The notes under the pieces were generated by a model. The model saw only the letters and a list, made by a program, of their open reading frames with translations, had not been told where the DNA came from and searched no databases. A program made the translations under genes and the position numbers. From contig JBMGUZ010000082.1 in the NCBI GenBank assembly GCA_051530055.1, forward strand, positions 1 through 10,170: DNA of 10,170 nucleotides, written 5' to 3'. Source of the DNA: Neoechinorhynchus agilis. Taxonomy: Eukaryota; Animalia; Acanthocephala. Positions 1 through 10,170 of the stretch are shown here, one piece after another (position 1 is the stretch's first letter; every line of letters begins with the position of its first letter).

Positions 1-79
1 GATCGGCGCTTTGTGTAGTGAGTGAATTATCGATCTCTGCTTAACATTTAAACACCGTATCGATTTGTCACTCACCACA
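1..79 (-). repeat. Start of 3' LTR (TGTGGTGAG...), probably running off the window edge
   Basis: The minus strand reads TG at 79-78 immediately after the purine tract, which itself follows the pol stop codon (TAG at 94-92). Confidence 0.8.
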
Positions 80-91
80 TTCCTCCCCCGT
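80..91 (-). other. Polypurine tract (ACGGGGGAGGAA)
   Basis: Purine run lies between the pol stop and the TG of the LTR, the canonical PPT position. Confidence 0.85.
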
Positions 92-1345
92 CTATTTCAG
101 AAACTTGTCATACGGTCTGGACGGAGGTTTGCGAATTCGATTGCTCCACCTTAACACCATATTATCTCTTCTACCATCCTCCCAGAACTCGGCCTTTGCT
201 TCTTCTATTGGTTGGGTTCCGTGGTCGATAGATCAGCGAGTGTTTACATTGGTTGGCGGCTATTCGTGCTCGATGGACTGCTGTTCGCGCTCGATTGGTT
301 TCTGTTCGTGCTTGATGGACTGCTGTTCGTGCTCTTCTATTATTTCACTTTCGTTTTGATCCCTCTCTCAATTTAGCTGCTCCATCGTCAGTCGATCGCG
401 AAGATAATCACCGTGTATGCGCCTGTATATCCCATCTCCGTGATTTATGACGAATAATCTCGGTCCCGTTTGTCTCCGCACAATTCCTTTTCCCACCTGT
501 GTAAACCCTCTGCCCTTTGAGAATCCCTTTGGCTGATGTTTCGATCTCAAACTTGGCTTTATATGATCCAATTTCGTAGCCAGCCGCCTTCCCATCATCA
601 TCATCTCAGCTGGGCACTGACCAGTCGCATTGTGCGGTGTATTTCTGCACGTTTTCAGAAACTCCCATACGTCTTTCATCTGAAGGGCGCCTGTCTTATC
701 GATAGTTCTCCTATTGAAAGTCCCCACGAATCTCTCCGTTAATCCATTCGATTGAGGGTGATATGGGCTGGTCCGGATGTGCTCGATAGCTTGATCTCTG
801 CAGAATAATGACAATTCCTCATTCACAAACTTAGGACCTTTATCAGCTACCAGGTATTTTGGACATCCCATTCTCGCAAAACATTCCCCCAGCTTCGATA
901 TTACATTTTTGCTGGTAGAATTTCGATTAAGACACCAGACTTCGGGCTCGTTTATGGGACCCGCCAGATCTACATGTACCCGTTCCCACGGTTTGGACGG
1001 AACATCCCAATGAAATATTGGTAATCTTGGAACGTCGGGACGTGATATTTGACACTGGACGCATGTCTTCACCTGCTGTTCGACCTCTTTGTCAGAACCT
1101 AGCCACCAAACATAATATCGCGTGAGTGCTTTCATCCCTTCGATTCCTGGGTGGCCTTCGTGAAGAACTCGCAGCACGGATTGTCGCAAAGACTTAGGAA
1201 AAATAATCAAGCGTTGCAGATACATTAGTATTCCGCATTCTTGAGATATCTCGGAACTCCTATGTACAAATGGTTTGTCTTCGTCTCGAATTTCTGCTGG
1301 CCAACCTTCACGAAACTGACCGCCACTATTCAGGGAATCCGACTG
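92..1345 (-). pseudogene. pol: Gypsy pol remnant: RNaseH-integrase linker and integrase
   Basis: GWPAEI...LIIFPKSLR linker; LHEGHPG...CVQC zinc finger; catalytic VHVD / VADKG / LTERF with exact D-35-E spacing. About 12-13 aa are missing after GPIN. The same frame continues past in-frame stops at 370-368, 262-260 and 235-233 to LRWSNRIRKPPSRPY and TAG at 94-92. Confidence 0.93.
264..334 (-). repeat. 21-bp tandem repeat, about 3.4 copies, in the integrase C-terminal tail (EHEQQSI-type 7-aa units)
   Basis: Units start at 264, 285, 306 and 327 (plus-strand consensus TCGTGCTCGATGGACTGCTGT). Confidence 0.85.
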
Positions 1346-1359
1346 ACTTCGTTTTCGGC

Positions 1360-1401
1360 CGGGTCCACTACTTTTAAAACTCCTCGCTTCAATAATCTGT
1401 C
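1360..1401 (-). pseudogene. N-terminal stub of Gypsy reverse transcriptase
   Basis: DRLLKRGVLKVVDP resembles the (L)DRLxxxGVIxPV motif opening Gypsy RT. Nothing further of RT (no YxDD) follows. Confidence 0.6.
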
Positions 1402-1699
1402 CATTGACATCTTTTTCCAGATTCCTATGTGTCCTTTCGGCTTGACTTTATCGACGGAACTTTCACACAACTGAGGCGCTAAGCCGCACTCGAAGGAGGC
1501 CGATGGACGATCAGCCTTGCACACCAAAGGAACCCAGCGATCGGTGACGTTGAACCTTCGACATATCAACCGCATTGTGAACGCGCACACCACACGGCCA
1601 CTGGGCCCTCATTAATCGATGTATGACCAAAACAGGAGCTTCATTGCACAAAAACACACACCAAACACCACGAGGGGCGCGTGCTAAATGGTAGCAAAA

Positions 1700-1768
1700 G
1701 CGCAGTGATGACGCGGGGACGACGGCGCCAACAGTGTCAAGGAAAGACACAAGCGTTCCTGCAAACAA
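1700..1768 (-). pseudogene. Possible aspartic protease remnant
   Basis: GTLVSFLDTVGAVV loosely resembles GxxVxFxLDTGAxV and lies upstream of the RT stub. The motif is imperfect. Confidence 0.3.
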
Positions 1769-2051
1769 TATCCGCCAATTCCCACAAGAACGAAACTTCC
1801 AACTCAGGCGAATATTCTTAAACGAACGGACACATTCCCGCTCGAACGAGACGAATTTAAGACATGCAATTTACCACGTCAACTAAAATTAGGTCGATTC
1901 ATTTCGCATATCTCAGCGAGCCGATTGCAAAACTGTAAGTTATTCTCGTTTCAATTTTGAGACGAACATCCTTCATCATTGATATCAAAATATCAATCGA
2001 TTGCCAATTAAATTAGCGTTTCCTTCGGCAATGTCATAAAATATATATATA

Positions 2052-3010
2052 TTTCGTGTTTGCAAGAAACACGGAATTAATCAACAAATTTATACCTCTT
2101 ACCGAGCCAGTAAAACGTATGCGGAAGCCCTTTCCAACATGAGACAAAACTCCCAACGTTATTTGGACGGTTTGTCGATCTGGCAATCCCGGACAGAGAT
2201 CCTGCACCTTCCGGAAAATGACCACAAGCAGTCGGCCTTGGACCTTCCCCTCATAAAGAAGATTCACAAATCCTTTAATGATCTTCTCGACGAGGTTTCC
2301 CAAGTTCGTCTTGCGGCGTGTTCTACAAAGGAATCGGGAGCCTGGCTAAATGCTCTCCCCGCCCCGACAATCGGAACTCTTCTAGAGGATTCTACTTTAA
2401 GGGTCGCAGTTTCTTTAAGATTGGGCCAGGATATTTGTATCCCGCATCGCTGTCGCTGCGGATCTATAGTTGAAGCCAATGGCAGACACGGCCTCAGTTG
2501 TAAAACGTCCAGAGGGAGGTTTCCAAGACACTCAGAATTGAACTCAATTTTGAGTAGAGCCCTAGATTCCGTCCACGTGCCCAATATTTAAGAGCCAAGT
2601 AACTTGTGCCGCCTAGACAGCAAGCGAACTGACGGTGTCACGGTTTTTCCATGGCGGGAGGGGAAGCCCCTTTTATGGGATGCGACTTGCGTGGACACGC
2701 TTGCCCCCAGTAATTTTCCCTTTTCAAAAAGGAGCCCTGAAGGTTCAGCGGTCGTAGCTGAAGTCCGAAAACGTACAAAATACAGAGAGCTTTTAAGGAC
2801 CTATTATTTCGTCCCTTTCGCCGTGGAGCCTTGGGACCGTCAGCGCTCACTCTCCTCGACGAAAGACGAAAAGGATGACGGGGGAACCGCGCTCTAGAAA
2901 TTTTCTCGCTCAGCGAATCGCAATTGCGATGCAGCGAGGGAACGCTGCCAGTATACTGGCAACGTCAAGAAGTTCACAGGAATAAATTGTAATCGTTGTA
3001 AATTAATAAA
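2052..3010 (+). mobile_element. 5'-truncated, inactive CRE-clade non-LTR retrotransposon (post-RT region, zinc finger, restriction-like endonuclease)
   Basis: SGAWLNALP...LRLG, CRCG-x8-HGLSC...RH zinc finger, PNI*EP (TAA at 2589-2591, same frame resumes), KRTDG...WDATCVDT, RKRTKY, FVPFAVE. Frameshifts near 2830 and 2865 precede TGEPRSRNFLAQRIAIAMQRGNAASILAT, with stop at 2983-2985 and AATAAA at 3005-3010. Clade assignment is from recalled motifs, not a search. Confidence 0.88.
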
Positions 3011-3218
3011 TTTTAGACTTTTTCATTAAATTTTTATAGTGTGCTCTGAATTTTGACCAGGATGTCTTCATAAGGCGGTGGCACAAAAGCACGACTTATT
3101 GTTAATATCAGTAAACGTTTAAGATTTCAAGACAACGAAAATTCATGTTGAAGTCAGTAAGTGCTTTTGAGCATCTTGGATTTTATCGATTCCTTAGTCA
3201 CGTTGGATCAAAAATGTC

Positions 3219-3266
3219 AATTGAAAAGACAGAATAGTCGGCGGCAAACATTTTGTCTTTTCAGTT
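3219..3266 (+). other. 17-bp inverted repeat with 14-nt loop
   Basis: AATTGAAAAGACAGAAT (3219-3235) pairs with ATTTTGTCTTTTCAGTT (3250-3266): 15 Watson-Crick and 2 G-U pairs as plus-strand RNA. Confidence 0.75.
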
Positions 3267-4242
3267 ATGAATTATTTGAGAAATCTAAAACGGCATTTGA
3301 AACAATTCGATGTTTCTTCATACGTTAGAAAAACCAAAGGTCAGCAATATTTGAACTAGATAATAAGATGCGGAGGAATTTAATGGAGAAAAGTTGAGAT
3401 TTTCAATCCTCATGGATTAACACATCTATCACAGGATGATTTTGTTGTTACATTTTCTTCTATCAGTCTAGTAGCTAGACGACTTCTCTGACTTTGAATA
3501 ATTAAATAGTCGTAAATAAATTTTTCACCTTGAATTCAGCAGCACCGTAATATTTTAATGGGACCAAAAACTAGATGTTGCGTGTGTTAAATTTTTTTAC
3601 TTTTGCGTGAATCTAATGCCTCGAATATTACTTTGTTCATAAAAACGTTCTCAATTTTAAGTCCTGACGTGAAAGTTTTAGCATCTCAACTGATTTTATT
3701 AAAAAGAAGGTTCTGTATTTTAATTTTTTACCAAACCCTTCGATAATATCTGAGAAATAGATCATAATTAACAGCGTCATTAAGATTCTTATTTAAAAAT
3801 TTAGAATAGCATAACCAGCAAAAATATAAAATAAACAAGACTGCTTACGTTTTAAGATTTTAGGCGTCTTTATACGAACGCAAGTCTTTAGCCTGTTAAC
3901 AAGCGAATGTTAGTCCGTTTGCTCATTGGGTAAAAAAGTATTATTTTAGCCAATCAGGTCTGAAAAGAAGTTAAATTTTTTCCTAACATCGCAGGTTTAT
4001 TTAGGCTTAAATTCCATATTAAATAAGATCACATCCAGCGAAGAAAGTAGCAATATTTTCTAAGATGATAGTTCGATGTATTTATATACTTCAATGACGT
4101 TCTTGCTAGGCTTAAAGTTGACGTTAGGAGCAAAAGAAGCATTGTATTCAAATGCGAATTAATAAATAGAAGAAAAATTATAGGAAAACGTTATATCTTT
4201 TGCTAAAAATTTCGAGGGGTGATGATACAGACACATGCGTCC

Positions 4243-4364
4243 AAGAGATTCGGACGAATCACTGTCGATCCGAGATCAGAAACATTCCTCGTACAAAACA
4301 TGAGTCTGGCTGTGCAACGGGACGGAACGCTGAATCCGTCCTTACCAGGACGGCGGCTGAGTGA
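4243..4364 (+). mobile_element. Short, old 3'-end fragment of a second CRE-like non-LTR element
   Basis: KRFGRITVDPRSETFLVQNMSLAVQR, then with a 2-nt insertion removed GNAESVL. This aligns codon for codon with KRMTGEPRSRNFLAQRIAIAMQRGNAASIL of the element at 2870-2960. Confidence 0.7.
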
Positions 4365-5271
4365 TCCGGAGCGATAGTGAAAGTGATTTAACTTTAATTC
4401 CATACTAAAAGGCACACTAAATTCTAAAAAAACATGCATATACAAAAAGCTAATAATTAGATCTCGTATTTACCTCCCAATTGTCAAGTGGAAATGATTT
4501 GTAAATTCAAACTCATCGATGAAAACAAGATTAATCATAGAGGATTGTTATACAATAAATCGTTTTTGTATCATTATAACAAATATATTTAAGGCAAATT
4601 TTTTTTTCGGACATCACTAACATTTTTTTGGATTAATTTCCATTTTCGACAGTTAAAAAATTTTACGCCTTCGCAAATCAATTTTTTCTATGTAGTAATA
4701 AAGTTGGAAGATCATACAAGAACTTTACTCGTTATCTTAGTTTAGATATACACAATCTCAAAAGAAAAAGCGAATGCAGTTTATTAAGTGAATTACTATA
4801 ATAATTTTGTAGTCCCGAATCGCATGTCAGTGTAGAAAAAACTAAGATGTTACTTCAATGAATATCTACAAGTAAAAGCGAAAATTGCTTTATTGTCTTA
4901 AATTTCGCAAATAATATTGAATAAGTACAGAAAAATGCGAATTTTCCCCTTGCACGAACTGAATTAGATTTTCAGAATTAAAACATAAATAAGAAGACAT
5001 TTGAAACAAATCACTGGCGTTATTATCATAAACGTGCTTTTGAATGTTATTGGGTACAAAGAACAAAGCCGTAAATATTTGGTAGATAACAAGCTTGTTT
5101 GTCTATTTGTTGTGGGTTTCGTATCGTTCTAAATGATCTACGTACAACTTTTTTGCCTTCCTTTAATCTACTGAACGACTACAGAGAAATCGTAACTTCG
5201 CTATAACACGTTTTCTATAAGTTTGGTTTATTGTCAACAAACAATCCTGCACGCTATAATAAGCATTATTA

Positions 5272-5278
5272 TTTCGAG
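5272..5278 (+). promoter_or_regulatory. Candidate 3' splice or trans-splice acceptor (TTTCGAG) 12 nt before the first ATG
   Basis: T-rich acceptor-like heptamer at the transition from AT-rich spacer to coding sequence; the ATG at 5291 is in an AAAC-ATG context. Confidence 0.35.
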
Positions 5279-5290
5279 ATTAACATAAAC

Positions 5291-8200
5291 ATGTCCCAAG
5301 AACGAAGAAATGATCAAAATAAAGAACAAGCGTCTTATATTGCCGAACCTGATAATAAGAAACAGTCTATTGATACAACAGTCGGATTAAACCTTCATTT
5401 GGGAACAACTGAGCCGCTTGATCAAGGGCGATCATCCCATGACTTAGCAGTCACTGGACACGTCGAAATGGCACAGTCTACATCACTGCATCTACATCAA
5501 ACACAACCAGAATCAGTTGTCCATTCTGTTCACCACAACGAAGAACGGCGTCCGGAAACACCGCAGAGAAAACGTAGTCTTCAAGTGGAAGCTACGGCCG
5601 AGGAACAACGAACTTATGGCACGTCTTCAACCGCCAAGCGCTTTCGGATACCTGCTGAAATGACTACTACACGAGTGCAGCCGCAGCAAAAAGTATTGAT
5701 TCAACCTGATATCCGCCAAAAAGTGGAGGAAACTGATGACCAAAGTAATGTAACAGGACATCAGGCAGCGGGGGAACGAAAACGATGCCATGCAGGAGAA
5801 AATTCGGAATCAAATATATCGACTATTAAGACATCACCAGCAAACAAGAGATCACGAGGACTGCTAGAACAATTTGAAGGAACGCAGCATAGTGTTGGTC
5901 GGAGAACGTTGACACCGTTGCCGCAACCTCACGCTCAGAGTCAACAAGTGTTTATGAATCCCCGAATACAATCCGCTGGCCAGGGTAGAACTTATGATTT
6001 GGCGCAAAATCCACAGTTTCCATCCCAGCAAACGTCTCGAGAAAATTATGGACAAGCTCAGCGAATGGCAATGACTGCTGCAATGCAATCTGCTGGTCAA
6101 GGCGGAAATTATACTCCGGCGCCGAATCCACAGGGCCCACCCCAACAAACGCCTCTAAAAAACTATGGACAAGCTCAGCGAATGGCAATGAATGCTGCAA
6201 TGCAATCTGCTGGTCAAGGCGGAAATTATACTCCGGCGCCGAATCCACAGGGCCCACCCCAACAAACGCCTCTAAAAAACTATGGGCAAACGCAGCCAAT
6301 AGCAATGAATGCTGCAATGCAATCTGCTGGTCAAGGCGGAAATTATACTCCAGCGCCGAATCCACAGGGCCCACCCCAACAAACGCCTCTAAAAAACTAT
6401 GGGCAAACGCAGCCAATGGCAATGAATGCTGCAATGCAATCTGCTGGTCAAGGCGGAAATTATACTCCGGCGCCGAATCCACAGGGCCCACCCCAACAAA
6501 CGCCTCTAAAAAACTATGGGCAAACGCAGCCAATGGCAATGAATGCTGCAATGCAATCTGCTGGTCAAGGCGGAAATTATACTCCGGTGCCGAATCCACA
6601 GGGCCCACCCCAACAAACGCCTCTAAAAAACTATGGGCAAACGCAGCCAATGGCAATGAATGCTGCAATGCAATCTGCTGGTCAAGGAGGATATTATATT
6701 CCGGCGGCGAATCAACAGGGCCCACCCCAACAAACGTTTCCAAAAGACTATGGGCAAGCTCAGCGAATGGCAATGATTGCTGCAATGCAATCTGCTGGTC
6801 AAGGCGGAAATTATACTCCGGTGCCGAATCCACAGGGCCCACCCCAACAAACGCCTCTAAAAAACTATGGCAAGCCAGCAATGCATGCTGCAATGCAATC
6901 TGCTGGTCAAGGGGAATTCCGGGCAATCACAGGGCCCACCCCAACAAACGTCCAAAAGACTATGGGCAAACGCAGCGAATGGCAATGATTGCTGCAATGC
7001 AATCTGCTGGTCAAGGCGGAAATTATACTCCGGTGCCGAATCCACAGGGCCCACCCCAACAAACGCCTCTAAAAAACTATGGACAAACGCAGCCAATAGC
7101 AATGAATGCTGCAATGCAATCTGCTGGTCAAGGCGGAAATTATACTCCGGCGCCGAATCCACAGGGCCCACCCCAACAAACGCCTCTAAAAGACTATGGG
7201 CAAACGCAGCCAATAGCAATGAATGCTGCAATGCAATCTGCTGGTCAAGGCGGAAATTATACTCCGGCGCCGAATCCACAGGGCCCACCCCAACAAACGC
7301 CTCAAGGATATTACGGGCAAGTGCAGCGAGTGCAAATGAATGCCGGAATGCCGACCGCTGGTCAAGGCGGATATAATATTCCGGCACCGAATACACAAGG
7401 TCAATCCCAACAAATGCCCCAAGGAAATTATGGGCACGTAAGGCGAATGCCAATGAATGCTGGAGTACTGACCGCTAATCAAAGCGGATATTATATTTCG
7501 GCGCCGAATCTACAGGGTCCAGCCCAACAAACGCCCCAAGGATATTATGGGCAAGTACTGCGAATCCCAGTGAATTCTGGAGTACCGGCCGCTCGCCAAG
7601 GCGAATATTTCACTCCGGCGCCCAATCCACAAGGTCGATCCCAACAAACGCCCCAAGGATATTATGGGCAACCGCAGAGAATGTCAATGAATGCTGGAAT
7701 GTCGGTCACTAGTCAAGGCCGACATTATACTCGAGCGCCGAATCCTCAGGGCCCATCCCATCAGATGAATATCCAACGTTCCGGACAAGTGCAGCAAATG
7801 CCAACGATTGCTAGAATGCCGACCGCAAGTGAAGGTGGAGATCCCATGGTCGGACAGCGTCGTCAAATTCCCCCTCAACAGATACCGCCTCAACAGTTTG
7901 CAAAGGACCAACGATTGCCAGCAGGAAATGTAATGCAGGCTGCTGCCCAAGGCGGATACTATGTGCCGGCCAGGAATCCGCAGGTTCAAAATCAACAGAT
8001 GAATTTTGAACAGTATCGACAACTGCAGGGAACGCCATTTGATTGCCGGACGCCTATAATGCCAAGAAATCTTCAATTGCAATTTCCGGCCCATCAGCAG
8101 GCCGTAACCCAGCAATTGGCACAAAGAAATCATATGCCGATGAATCTCAAGGCACCGACTTCTCGATCGATAGTTTCCACCCAGCAGGATCCTCAATTAC

Positions 8201-8808
8201 AAGAGCAACATTCAAAAAATCAGCGGGTAGAACAGGAATCTATCTCAAATATATCGCAGCACCAACGTGAGCAACCCGGAGCTGCTCAAAAAAGTCGCCA
8301 GAATAATGTTTCCCTACAGCAACGGATGGACAGGAAGCGATGCCTTCCTCAAGCTGAAGAATTTATGGAAGATCGTGGAATCGAGACTCAATCAACATCA
8401 AAGAGACCACGGATTCCGGTGGACAAAGCGACGGTCAAAAAAGGCGACATGCCCGTAAAGCCAATAAATGAAGATGATACCGATGACTTGAATGACGAAC
8501 AATTCGCCGATTTATTTAGACCGTTTGGGAAACTTATGGACATTGCAAAAAGGGCGAAGAAATTGGAACTTGAGAAGAAGAAACGAGAAGAAAAATCGAA
8601 GAAAAATCCTTTTGACGACGATTCGGGGCCCTTTGAGTATCCATGTTCGCCAGAGATCCAACAGCAAACTTTAGACTCAAGGATGGACAGGCGACCAAGC
8701 GCGTTCGGACTTACCAAAGACGAGGCAAATGAAGAACGGATGAACATGTCCACCGAAAGTCGACTTCATTTCGATTTCGTGGACGAGCTGCTGGGATATC
8801 GAGGTTAG
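5291..8808 (+). CDS. Orphan low-complexity repeat protein (~1179 aa once 22 bp are restored), Q/P/G/Y/M-rich, predicted nuclear and largely disordered; apparent frameshift at ~6868-6952
   Basis: Track ORFs 5231-6988 and 6979-8808 share one 39-aa repeat. The first ATG is at 5291. 3518 bp plus 22 missing bp gives 3540 bp, or 1180 codons. Diverged repeat copies keep frame and 117-bp period. AATAAA lies 150 nt after the stop. No recognisable folded domain; additional upstream exons cannot be excluded. Confidence 0.8.
5966..8049 (+). repeat. Coding minisatellite: 18 units of 117 bp (39 aa)
   Basis: Unit starts at 5966, 6083, 6200, 6317, 6434, 6551, 6668, 6785, 6893, 6997, 7114, 7231, 7348, 7465, 7582, 7699, 7816 and 7933. 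Consensus MQSAGQGGNYTPAPNPQGPPQQTPLKNYGQTQPMAMNAA. Only the units at 6785 (108 bp) and 6893 (104 bp) are short. Confidence 0.95.
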
Positions 8809-8957
8809 GATATAAACTGAAACTGGATCAATTTAGTGGCAAGAGCGTTTATTCGACAAATCAATTCGTTCACCGTCCATTACTTCTGAATTTGGCCGGT
8901 GAAGTTTGTTCCATTGCCTTTTGCAAACGTTCACTGTAAAAATGTTGAAGATTTGTA

Positions 8958-8963
8958 AATAAA
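8958..8963 (+). terminator. Candidate polyadenylation signal AATAAA
   Basis: Hexamer 150 nt downstream of the TAG at 8806-8808, followed by T-rich sequence. It could occur by chance in AT-rich DNA. Confidence 0.45.
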
Positions 8964-9078
8964 GTGTAAATATGTTATATGAAATTTTATTAAGCCGCAG
9001 ATTATATTCAGTAAAAAATGTTCTCAGAATCTAAACGAACAAAAAATTCGCAATGGAGGATAATATTAATTTAACAAG

Positions 9079-9134
9079 CAAGGTGAATAGGATTGCAGGG
9101 CGTGCCGAAAGACGAACTTCGTCTTTTCACCTTG
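9079..9134. other. Nested inverted repeats (outer 9 bp, inner 9 bp)
   Basis: CAAGGTGAA (9079-9087) / TTCACCTTG (9126-9134) encloses AAAGACGAA (9108-9116) / TTCGTCTTT (9118-9126). Confidence 0.75.
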
Positions 9135-9213
9135 TTTATTTAACACCATTCTTAGTTCTTTTTTATACATTGTCCAAGAGATCAAAATGCGCAAATTAGT
9201 TTAAAATAATTCG

Positions 9214-10104
9214 CCACAAAACCATTTGGCTGCGGCTGCGAACTCATTCTATAGTAATTGTAGTTTGTTTTTAAAAGTATCCCTAATTAAATGGACCTCC
9301 TCGACGAGAGATGCAATGCCACTGTCGAAGCCTTGACGAGAGATGCAATGCCACTGTCGAAGCCTTGTATTAGATATTAGCCAAGCTGTGGCGATGTATC
9401 GTTTTCGGACAATCAAGTTCATGGATTCCTTTGGTGTCCACGTCTTGGCCTCTCATTTGCAAATCAATGAGATTGAGCGAGCCACGCCAAAGCGAGACGA
9501 AAGGAGCAATCATCTATTTTAGAAATCAATCGACGGCATTGGTAAAGCGTTAAGAAAATCACAGGAACATTTGGTTGAGGCTGTGAACTAATTCTTTAGT
9601 AATTGGAGTTTGTTTTTAAAAGTTTCCCTAATTAAATTGACCTCCTCGGCGAGAGATGCAATGCCACTGTCGAAGCCTTGAGTATTAGATTATTAGCCAA
9701 GCTGTGGCGATGTATCGTTTTCGGAAAATCAAGTTCGTGAATTCCGCTGGTGTCTACATCTTGGCATCTCATTTGCAAATCAATGAGATTGAGCGAGCCA
9801 CGGCAAAGCGAGACGAAAGGAGCAATCAGCAATTCTAGAAATCAATCGACGGGATAGGTAAAGCGTTAAGAAAACCACAAAACCATTTGGCTGCGGCTGC
9901 GAACTCATTCTATAGTAATTGTAGTTTGTTTTTAAAAGTATCCCTAATTAAATTGACCTCCTCAACGAGAGATGCAATGCCACTGTCGAAGCCTTGAGTA
10001 TTAGATTATTTGCCAAGCTGTGGCGATGTATCGTTTTCGGACAATCAAGTTCATGGATTCCTTTGGTGTCTACGTCTTGGCCTCTTATTTGCAAATCAAT
10101 GAGA
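9214..10104. repeat. Tandem array of ~316-bp units (2.7 copies, A-B-A)
   Basis: Units start at 9214 (345 bp, including a 32-bp duplication), 9559 (316 bp) and 9875 (partial, similarity ends at 10104). Confidence 0.95.
9303..9366. repeat. Perfect 32-bp direct duplication inside the first 316-bp unit
   Basis: GACGAGAGATGCAATGCCACTGTCGAAGCCTT occurs at 9303-9334 and 9335-9366; it is single-copy in the other units. Confidence 0.95.
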
Positions 10105-10170
10105 AAGCTGTTGGACTATGCAGCAGCGTTGGATTTACGTATTTCGAATACTTTCCAAAAGATCCAAGAC

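Follow-up and report, generated by a model that had tools for sequence, protein, structure and literature searches.

A triplicated RKR-x20-KRxR motif around a tandem array in Neoechinorhynchus agilis: putative long-linker bipartite nuclear localization signals in an orphan and possibly dead gene

Classical bipartite nuclear localization signals (NLSs) combine an upstream KR with a downstream K(K/R)X(K/R), as in KR...KRXK (PMC8140498). Ashwin carries two functional bipartite NLSs with linkers of 14 and 18 residues (PMC13586215), a 14-residue spacer of Pom121 was bound on importin-alpha in a crystal structure (PMC4569319), and the linkers of bipartite signals have been reported to range from 8-20 residues (bioRxiv 10.1101/2025.06.12.659319). 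Here we describe a window of 10,170 nucleotides from the acanthocephalan Neoechinorhynchus agilis (assembly GCA_051530055.1, contig JBMGUZ010000082.1, positions 1 to 10,170). The window is eukaryotic DNA with one long, intron-less, plus-strand gene that is split in two open reading frames (ORFs). The conceptual protein of this gene contains three modules, each an RKR followed after exactly 20 residues by a KRxR, placed on either side of a long tandem array. The most likely reading, on which we would place roughly an even bet, is that the modules are three redundant, long-linker classical bipartite NLSs, with a role in nuclear import suggested by their sequences. The modules and the array are:

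Module M1: 5567..5653 (RKR to KRFR 5567-5647), plus strand, frame 2, RKR-SLQVEATAEEQRTYGTSSTA-KRFR-IP.
Module M2: 5777..5860 (RKR to KRSR 5777-5857), plus strand, frame 2, RKR-CHAGENSESNISTIKTSPAN-KRSR-G.
Module M3: 8332..8418 (RKR to KRPR 8332-8412), plus strand, frame 1, RKR-CLPQAEEFMEDRGIETQSTS-KRPR-IP.
Tandem array: 6001..7760, plus strand, 15.2 copies of a 117-nt (39-residue) unit.

A regular-expression search for RKR-x20-KRxR on the three forward frames recovered M1, M2 and M3 exactly as an earlier sequence-only reading of this DNA had described them, in positions that flank the array at 6001-7760. No other match was present in the remaining frames or on the other strand of the window. 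All three RKR and all three KRxR clusters of the conceptual protein fall inside the modules, leaving no orphan clusters. As a null model, the non-array N- and C-terminal parts were shuffled 20,000 times. The strict motif gave one match in a single shuffle and two or more matches in none, and with a loose motif, [KR]3-xL-K[KR]x[KR], where L could take any common value of 8-30, no shuffle exceeded one pair. The module pattern is real and not a product of chance.

The modules also resemble each other between the clusters. Comparison of the N-terminal part against the C-terminal part by BLASTP aligned M1 and M3 without gaps, with 15/36 identical residues (E=3e-4). The linkers of these two modules are identical at 6/20 positions (P=0.005), and both continue with IP after the second cluster. 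Linker identity was 4/20 between M1 and M2 (P=0.07) and 3/20 between M2 and M3 (P=0.14). The linkers had been called otherwise diverged, a description that overlooks the match between M1 and M3; the proposal of a duplicated module is supported for M1 and M3, with M2 only at the border. The alignments provide good support for an internal duplication of one linear motif of ~30 residues that gave M1 and M3, and M2 is a plausible, though borderline, duplicate of the same motif. In an AlphaFold2 (AF2) model of the C-terminus, M3 lies in coil with a predicted local distance difference test score (pLDDT) of ~50, and the model as a whole is of low confidence (pLDDT 57, predicted template modelling score 0.16), so that it yielded no fold assignment.

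If the modules act as importin-alpha-dependent bipartite NLSs, the KR of the first cluster would occupy the minor site of importin-alpha, the K-R-x-R of the second cluster would occupy the major site, and the acidic, Ser/Thr-rich linker of 20 residues would loop out between them. The upstream cluster contains KR, as RKR, in all three modules, and the downstream KRFR, KRSR and KRPR all match K-(K/R)-X-(K/R). Both clusters thus fit the bipartite consensus (PMC8140498), as the sequence-only reading had it, and its statement that linkers beyond 10-12 residues are documented agrees with the 14 and 18 residues of Ashwin (PMC13586215) and the 8-20 range (bioRxiv 10.1101/2025.06.12.659319). The additional ideas that several copies give avidity and that receptor binding chaperones the array are speculation.

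Several observations weigh against the import reading. The 20-residue linker exceeds the canonical 10-12 residues and sits at the limit of the 8-20 range. Deletions in a looped-out linker should also be tolerated, and importin binding therefore gives no reason to expect an exact length; a true constraint on length would imply something more specific. The reading frame of the window is broken, with a net change of -13 nt within a decayed array unit at 6860-6963, and four of the four other long-form loci in GCA_051530055.1 are pseudogenes. Between the window and the closest of these, L004, the coding C-terminus is 93.8% identical and the flanks 94.5-95.5%, and the ratio of nonsynonymous to synonymous substitution rates (dN/dS) is 0.61 over 216 codons and 1.5 over 133 codons. 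Homologues outside N. agilis were found neither by word-indexed searches (with the C-terminus, the N-terminus and the profile A1) nor by an exhaustive HMMER scan of the C-terminal 202 residues against 1.84 billion representatives; all of these returned only N. agilis proteins. Finally, the one distant paralogue that retains a similar module, P0006, would match by chance with a probability of ~0.05-0.1, by our own estimate, if its dibasic clusters are kept and their positions randomised.

The strongest competing explanation, possible though on the unlikely side, is that the window locus is a pseudogene in a dying family, that the modules have no present function and that their equal spacing is an old duplication to which no later insertions or deletions (indels) were added. 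It bears directly on the structure of the locus, which is as follows:

ORF1, N-terminal half: 5231-6988 with the first ATG at 5291 (gene part 5291..6988), plus strand, frame 2.
ORF2, C-terminal half: 6979..8808, plus strand, frame 1, open from at least 6802.
Decayed repeat unit of 104 nt: 6860..6963, plus strand, with deletions of 9, 11 and 2 nt that move the frame from 2 to 3 to 1.

The ATG at 5291 is the same start as in the annotated paralogue P0002, and an in-frame stop lies immediately upstream of it. ORF1 reaches its stop 24 codons past its exit from the repeat frame. The rest of the array falls in ORF2, together with a Q-rich spacer, M3, a predicted helix and a conserved tail. In its assembled form the window copy is unable to encode the full protein. 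The break is made of three separate deletions, unlike a simple homopolymer error, and exact-product look-ups for both ORF halves gave no record, both of which favour a relic. On the other side, ~1,170 codons are open outside the one decayed unit, no stop occurs in the 737 non-array codons of the window (P ~0.06 under neutral decay at 2.5%), and the array is expanded and highly homogeneous. The N. agilis reference assembly is a hybrid of Oxford Nanopore Technologies and Illumina reads from pooled worms (PMC12690905), and should the window derive from this assembly or one like it, a tandem array of 1.8 kb is a place where an error could plausibly have arisen. Unit 6860-6963 is thus either a genuine inactivating lesion or an array misassembly. 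The unit contains the palindrome GGAATTCC and is flanked on each side by near-identical 'MAMIAAM...TPVPNPQ' units; its appearance is that of a junction within the array, left by duplication or by assembly. A small intron or a programmed frameshift that would rescue the frame was considered, and no evidence for either was found.

The window gene belongs to a small family. Six N. agilis proteins, all annotated as hypothetical, were assigned to it: P0001 (ACOME3_008032), P0002 (ACOME3_006612), P0003 (ACOME3_007344), P0004 (ACOME3_003325), P0005 (ACOME3_006743) and P0006 (ACOME3_006130). The word-indexed protein search missed P0004 (89% identical) and P0006, both of which were recovered by the exhaustive scan, so the negatives of the indexed searches need care. 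The family has so far been seen in N. agilis only. P0001-P0004 are fragments of long-form paralogues (82-95% nucleotide identity) in which the order of N-terminus, array and C-terminus is kept, and P0005 and P0006 have the C-terminal motif in common with the window protein. The sequence-only reading had taken the modules as support for both ORF halves being one protein. It is not the modules, however, but the order common to the paralogous loci that shows the halves to be one gene. The long-form loci are:

L004: CM121341.1, 14.0 Mb, the closest copy with flanks ~95% identical; N-terminal half broken, M1 lost, M2 and M3 intact.
L002: CM121342.1, 8.47 Mb; the M1, M2 and M3 strings intact in different frames, with a frameshift between M1 and M2.
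L003: CM121342.1, 11.5 Mb; stops, M1 linker cut to 14 residues, M2 frameshifted.
L001: CM121342.1, 14.1 Mb; 5' truncated, stops in the array, RKR of M3 changed to RK-stop.

The stops, frameshifts, truncations or transposable element (TE) insertions in all four loci add to the case for a dying family, as do the dN/dS of 0.6-1.5 against L004 and a coding identity equal to that of the flanks; because of the latter two, recent purifying selection is not visible. Homology of L002 to the window stops at window position 8473. At that point L002 has an ORF on the minus strand (12389-12721) with reverse-transcriptase-like motifs, read by eye, and it looks as if a TE insertion truncated this copy. The annotated gene model of P0001 contains an 87-nt in-frame 'intron' (L001 10505-10620) that skips a CGA to TGA stop in the RKR of M3. 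This intron, which would remove the first cluster of M3, was rejected as an annotation artefact, its sole effect being to skip a pseudogene stop. The array has 15 units in the window and 4.5-7.5 in L001, L002 and L004, and the first ~9 window units are almost identical at the DNA level, which indicates recent expansion or homogenisation. The window copy, with the largest array and 737 stop-free non-array codons, is the most intact of the long form and the one most likely to be alive or to have died only very recently. If an assembly error accounts for the frame break, its modules may be functional; otherwise they may be a very recent relic. The relic explanation concerns present function only and is compatible with an ancestral role of the modules as NLSs.

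Whether the 20-residue spacing is kept by selection was a question for the paralogues. The close ones were dropped as a test, since they are 82-95% identical or dead, with dN/dS of ~0.6-1.5; the only in-frame linker indel found, to x14, is in L003, a clear pseudogene. P0006 is an intact single-exon ORF of 318 residues that lacks the 39-residue array and carries KR-x20-KRSK at residues 156-181. Pairwise global alignments under three gap settings placed this module in register with M3 with an ungapped linker; the MAFFT alignment A1 left it unaligned to M3, so the register rests on the pairwise alignments only. Downstream of the module the alignment of P0006 to the window protein requires indels, and the second cluster is separated from the tail motif by 95 residues in P0006 and by 97 in the window. 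Under residue shuffling the match had P=0.0004-0.003. A canonical KK-x11-KRSVK is present in P0006 as well, in keeping with nuclear targeting as a trait of the family. The equal spacing is accounted for mainly by common descent through internal duplication. A length constraint on the linker is possible, as this very distant paralogue keeps KR-x20-KRxK at the position of M3, and we regard its register as a real but single hint that the 20-residue length has been kept.

A quite unlikely explanation is that the clusters are independent basic patches, each of which would act by itself as a weak monopartite NLS, as a contact to the nucleolus or to chromatin/nucleic acid, or as a site of phospho-regulation, with no mechanistic meaning in the x20. 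KRxR by itself fits the monopartite K(K/R)X(K/R), 20 residues are more than is needed to bridge the two importin-alpha sites, and the dibasic clusters of P0006 are many, with successive spacings of 22, 21, 20 and 13 residues. However, each RKR in the window protein is paired with a KRxR at one exact distance without orphan clusters, and x20 recurs in P0006 in register with M3, even though the downstream alignment needs indels.

More doubtful still is the view that KR-x20-KRx[KR] is itself a length-constrained linear motif, either a fixed-geometry long bipartite NLS or a docking site for another partner. Under this view the motif would be conserved across low-complexity nuclear proteins of an acanthocephalan-specific family. 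The long form would carry it three times, and binding of receptors at several sites would there also keep the Tyr/Gln-rich array soluble.

A fourth, decayed copy of the module had been proposed near the C-terminus. The RMD-RRP-x20-SRLH string on which it was based is present from 8680/8689 as described. Its linker shares 2/20 residues with that of M3 (P=0.5), and the string sits in a separate conserved segment, so the fourth copy was abandoned:

Conserved C-terminal 41-residue family motif: 8683..8805, plus strand, MDRRPSAFGLTKDEANEERMNMSTESRLHFDFVDELLGYRG, containing the proposed fourth copy.

This tail is identical at 24/41 positions (59%, E=1e-14) to the tail of P0006 (residues 270-310), is also found in P0005 (residues 138-173), and is the most conserved segment of the family, with the consensus RP..FG[LF]T.DE.NE..NMS..SR.HF..VD..LG. 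The tail is a separate constrained motif rather than a decayed module, and it is the tail, rather than the basic modules, that defines the family. Searches of Pfam, PDB and other species gave no match to the acidic-hydrophobic tail. The end of the motif, HF.[FW]VD[ED][LF]LG, looks like an activation-domain-type motif, a resemblance drawn from the residue pattern.

The protein as a whole is predicted to be mostly disordered, with a hydrophilic N-terminus, the array, the Q-rich spacer and a C-terminus that carries the 41-residue motif. The array comprises 565 residues (Q 18%, P 15%, G 13%, A 12%, N 8%, M 6.5%, Y 5.8%), has two Tyr per unit and is of low complexity and nearly uncharged, with only 23 K+R and 4 D+E. 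The C-terminus was modelled as mostly coil plus one long charged helix:

Predicted amphipathic/charged helix: 8494..8592, plus strand, EQFADLFRPFGKLMDIAKRAKKLELEKKKREEK, from AF2 at low confidence.

No hit at or above the Pfam gathering score was obtained for the protein of this gene; the only listing was a sub-threshold, low-complexity match to PF06623 MHC_I_C (E=0.011, 15.9 bits against a cutoff of 20.4), and no stretch passes alone. PDB gave 0 sequence hits at E<=1, and a profile search gave only noise at E ~1.

Tyr/Gly/Gln-rich repeats occur in secreted structural proteins, and RKR and KRxR resemble dibasic or furin-type convertase sites. It is nevertheless very improbable that the modules are processing sites of a secreted structural or peptide precursor with the array as extracellular material. 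No signal peptide or hydrophobic N-terminus was seen on reading the N-termini of the window ORF (MSQERRNDQNKEQ...), P0002 and P0006, all of which are hydrophilic; an in-frame stop lies just 5' of the ATG; and the C-terminal part combines a charged helix with an acidic-hydrophobic tail. That the basic residues coincide by pure chance, for which only the small number of sites speaks, is next to impossible given 0/20,000 shuffles with two or more matches and the similarity of M1 and M3.

Downstream of the gene, one candidate processing signal was noted from its sequence:

Candidate AATAAA polyadenylation signal: 8958..8963, plus strand, ~150 nt past the stop.

The 3' flank that holds this signal is common to L001 and L004. 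Tandem repeats follow at 9299-10104 (a 316-nt period in 2.4 copies with 91% match and a 32-nt period in 2.2 copies). Because the match to L004 resumes at 10104-10170, the duplicated segment reaches past the gene. The gene is located in TE-rich DNA. The minus strand has a retrotransposon integrase fragment at 368-1225 (Integrase_H2C2, E=4e-15; rve, E=2e-8), adjoined by a 21-nt tandem repeat in 3.6 copies at 259-334. Two adjacent Cys/His-rich ORFs of 150 and 97 residues, without a Pfam hit, occupy 2139-2897 on the plus strand and may, as an impression only, be the tail of a non-LTR (long terminal repeat) retrotransposon ORF. The stretch 3000-5200 is AT-rich. Rfam and tRNA scans of the window were empty.

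At present the value of these observations is mainly one of annotation, in that several N. agilis 'hypothetical proteins' are pseudogene fragments. Functional modules would give a natural case of a bipartite NLS whose linker is of extreme and apparently fixed length. Such a case could help to calibrate NLS predictors and to study what sets the limit on linkers, and it would mark an acanthocephalan-restricted family of low-complexity proteins as nuclear.

Among known systems, prion-like or FET-type low-complexity nuclear proteins have an import receptor that also suppresses self-association. The window protein is like them in its Tyr/Gln/Gly/Pro-rich, nearly uncharged repeats flanked by import-signal-like motifs. 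In contrast to them, it has no RNA recognition motif, RGG or PY-NLS and no detectable homology, and the chaperoning idea is speculative. Within its own family, P0006 differs from the window protein in its 318 residues, the lack of an array and a single KR-x20-KRSK accompanied by a canonical KK-x11 signal. The nucleoplasmin-type bipartite NLS, KR-x10-12-K(K/R)X(K/R), is alike in its KR and K-R-x-R clusters and its acidic or polar linker, and may be alike in a disordered location, M3 being coil in a low-confidence model; it differs in a linker of 10-12 residues compared to the 20 of the putative signals here. Ashwin (PMC13586215) and Pom121 (PMC4569319), the latter with several basic boxes, are alike in having more than one bipartite-like signal, linkers of more than 12 residues and, probably, a disordered spacer. 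Compared to these two proteins, with which it shares no sequence homology, the window protein has three copies of one identical length at the top of the reported range. The host gene is an orphan that may be dead. Duplication of a putative NLS within one protein is nothing out of the ordinary, and only the fixed 20-residue linker is mildly unusual.

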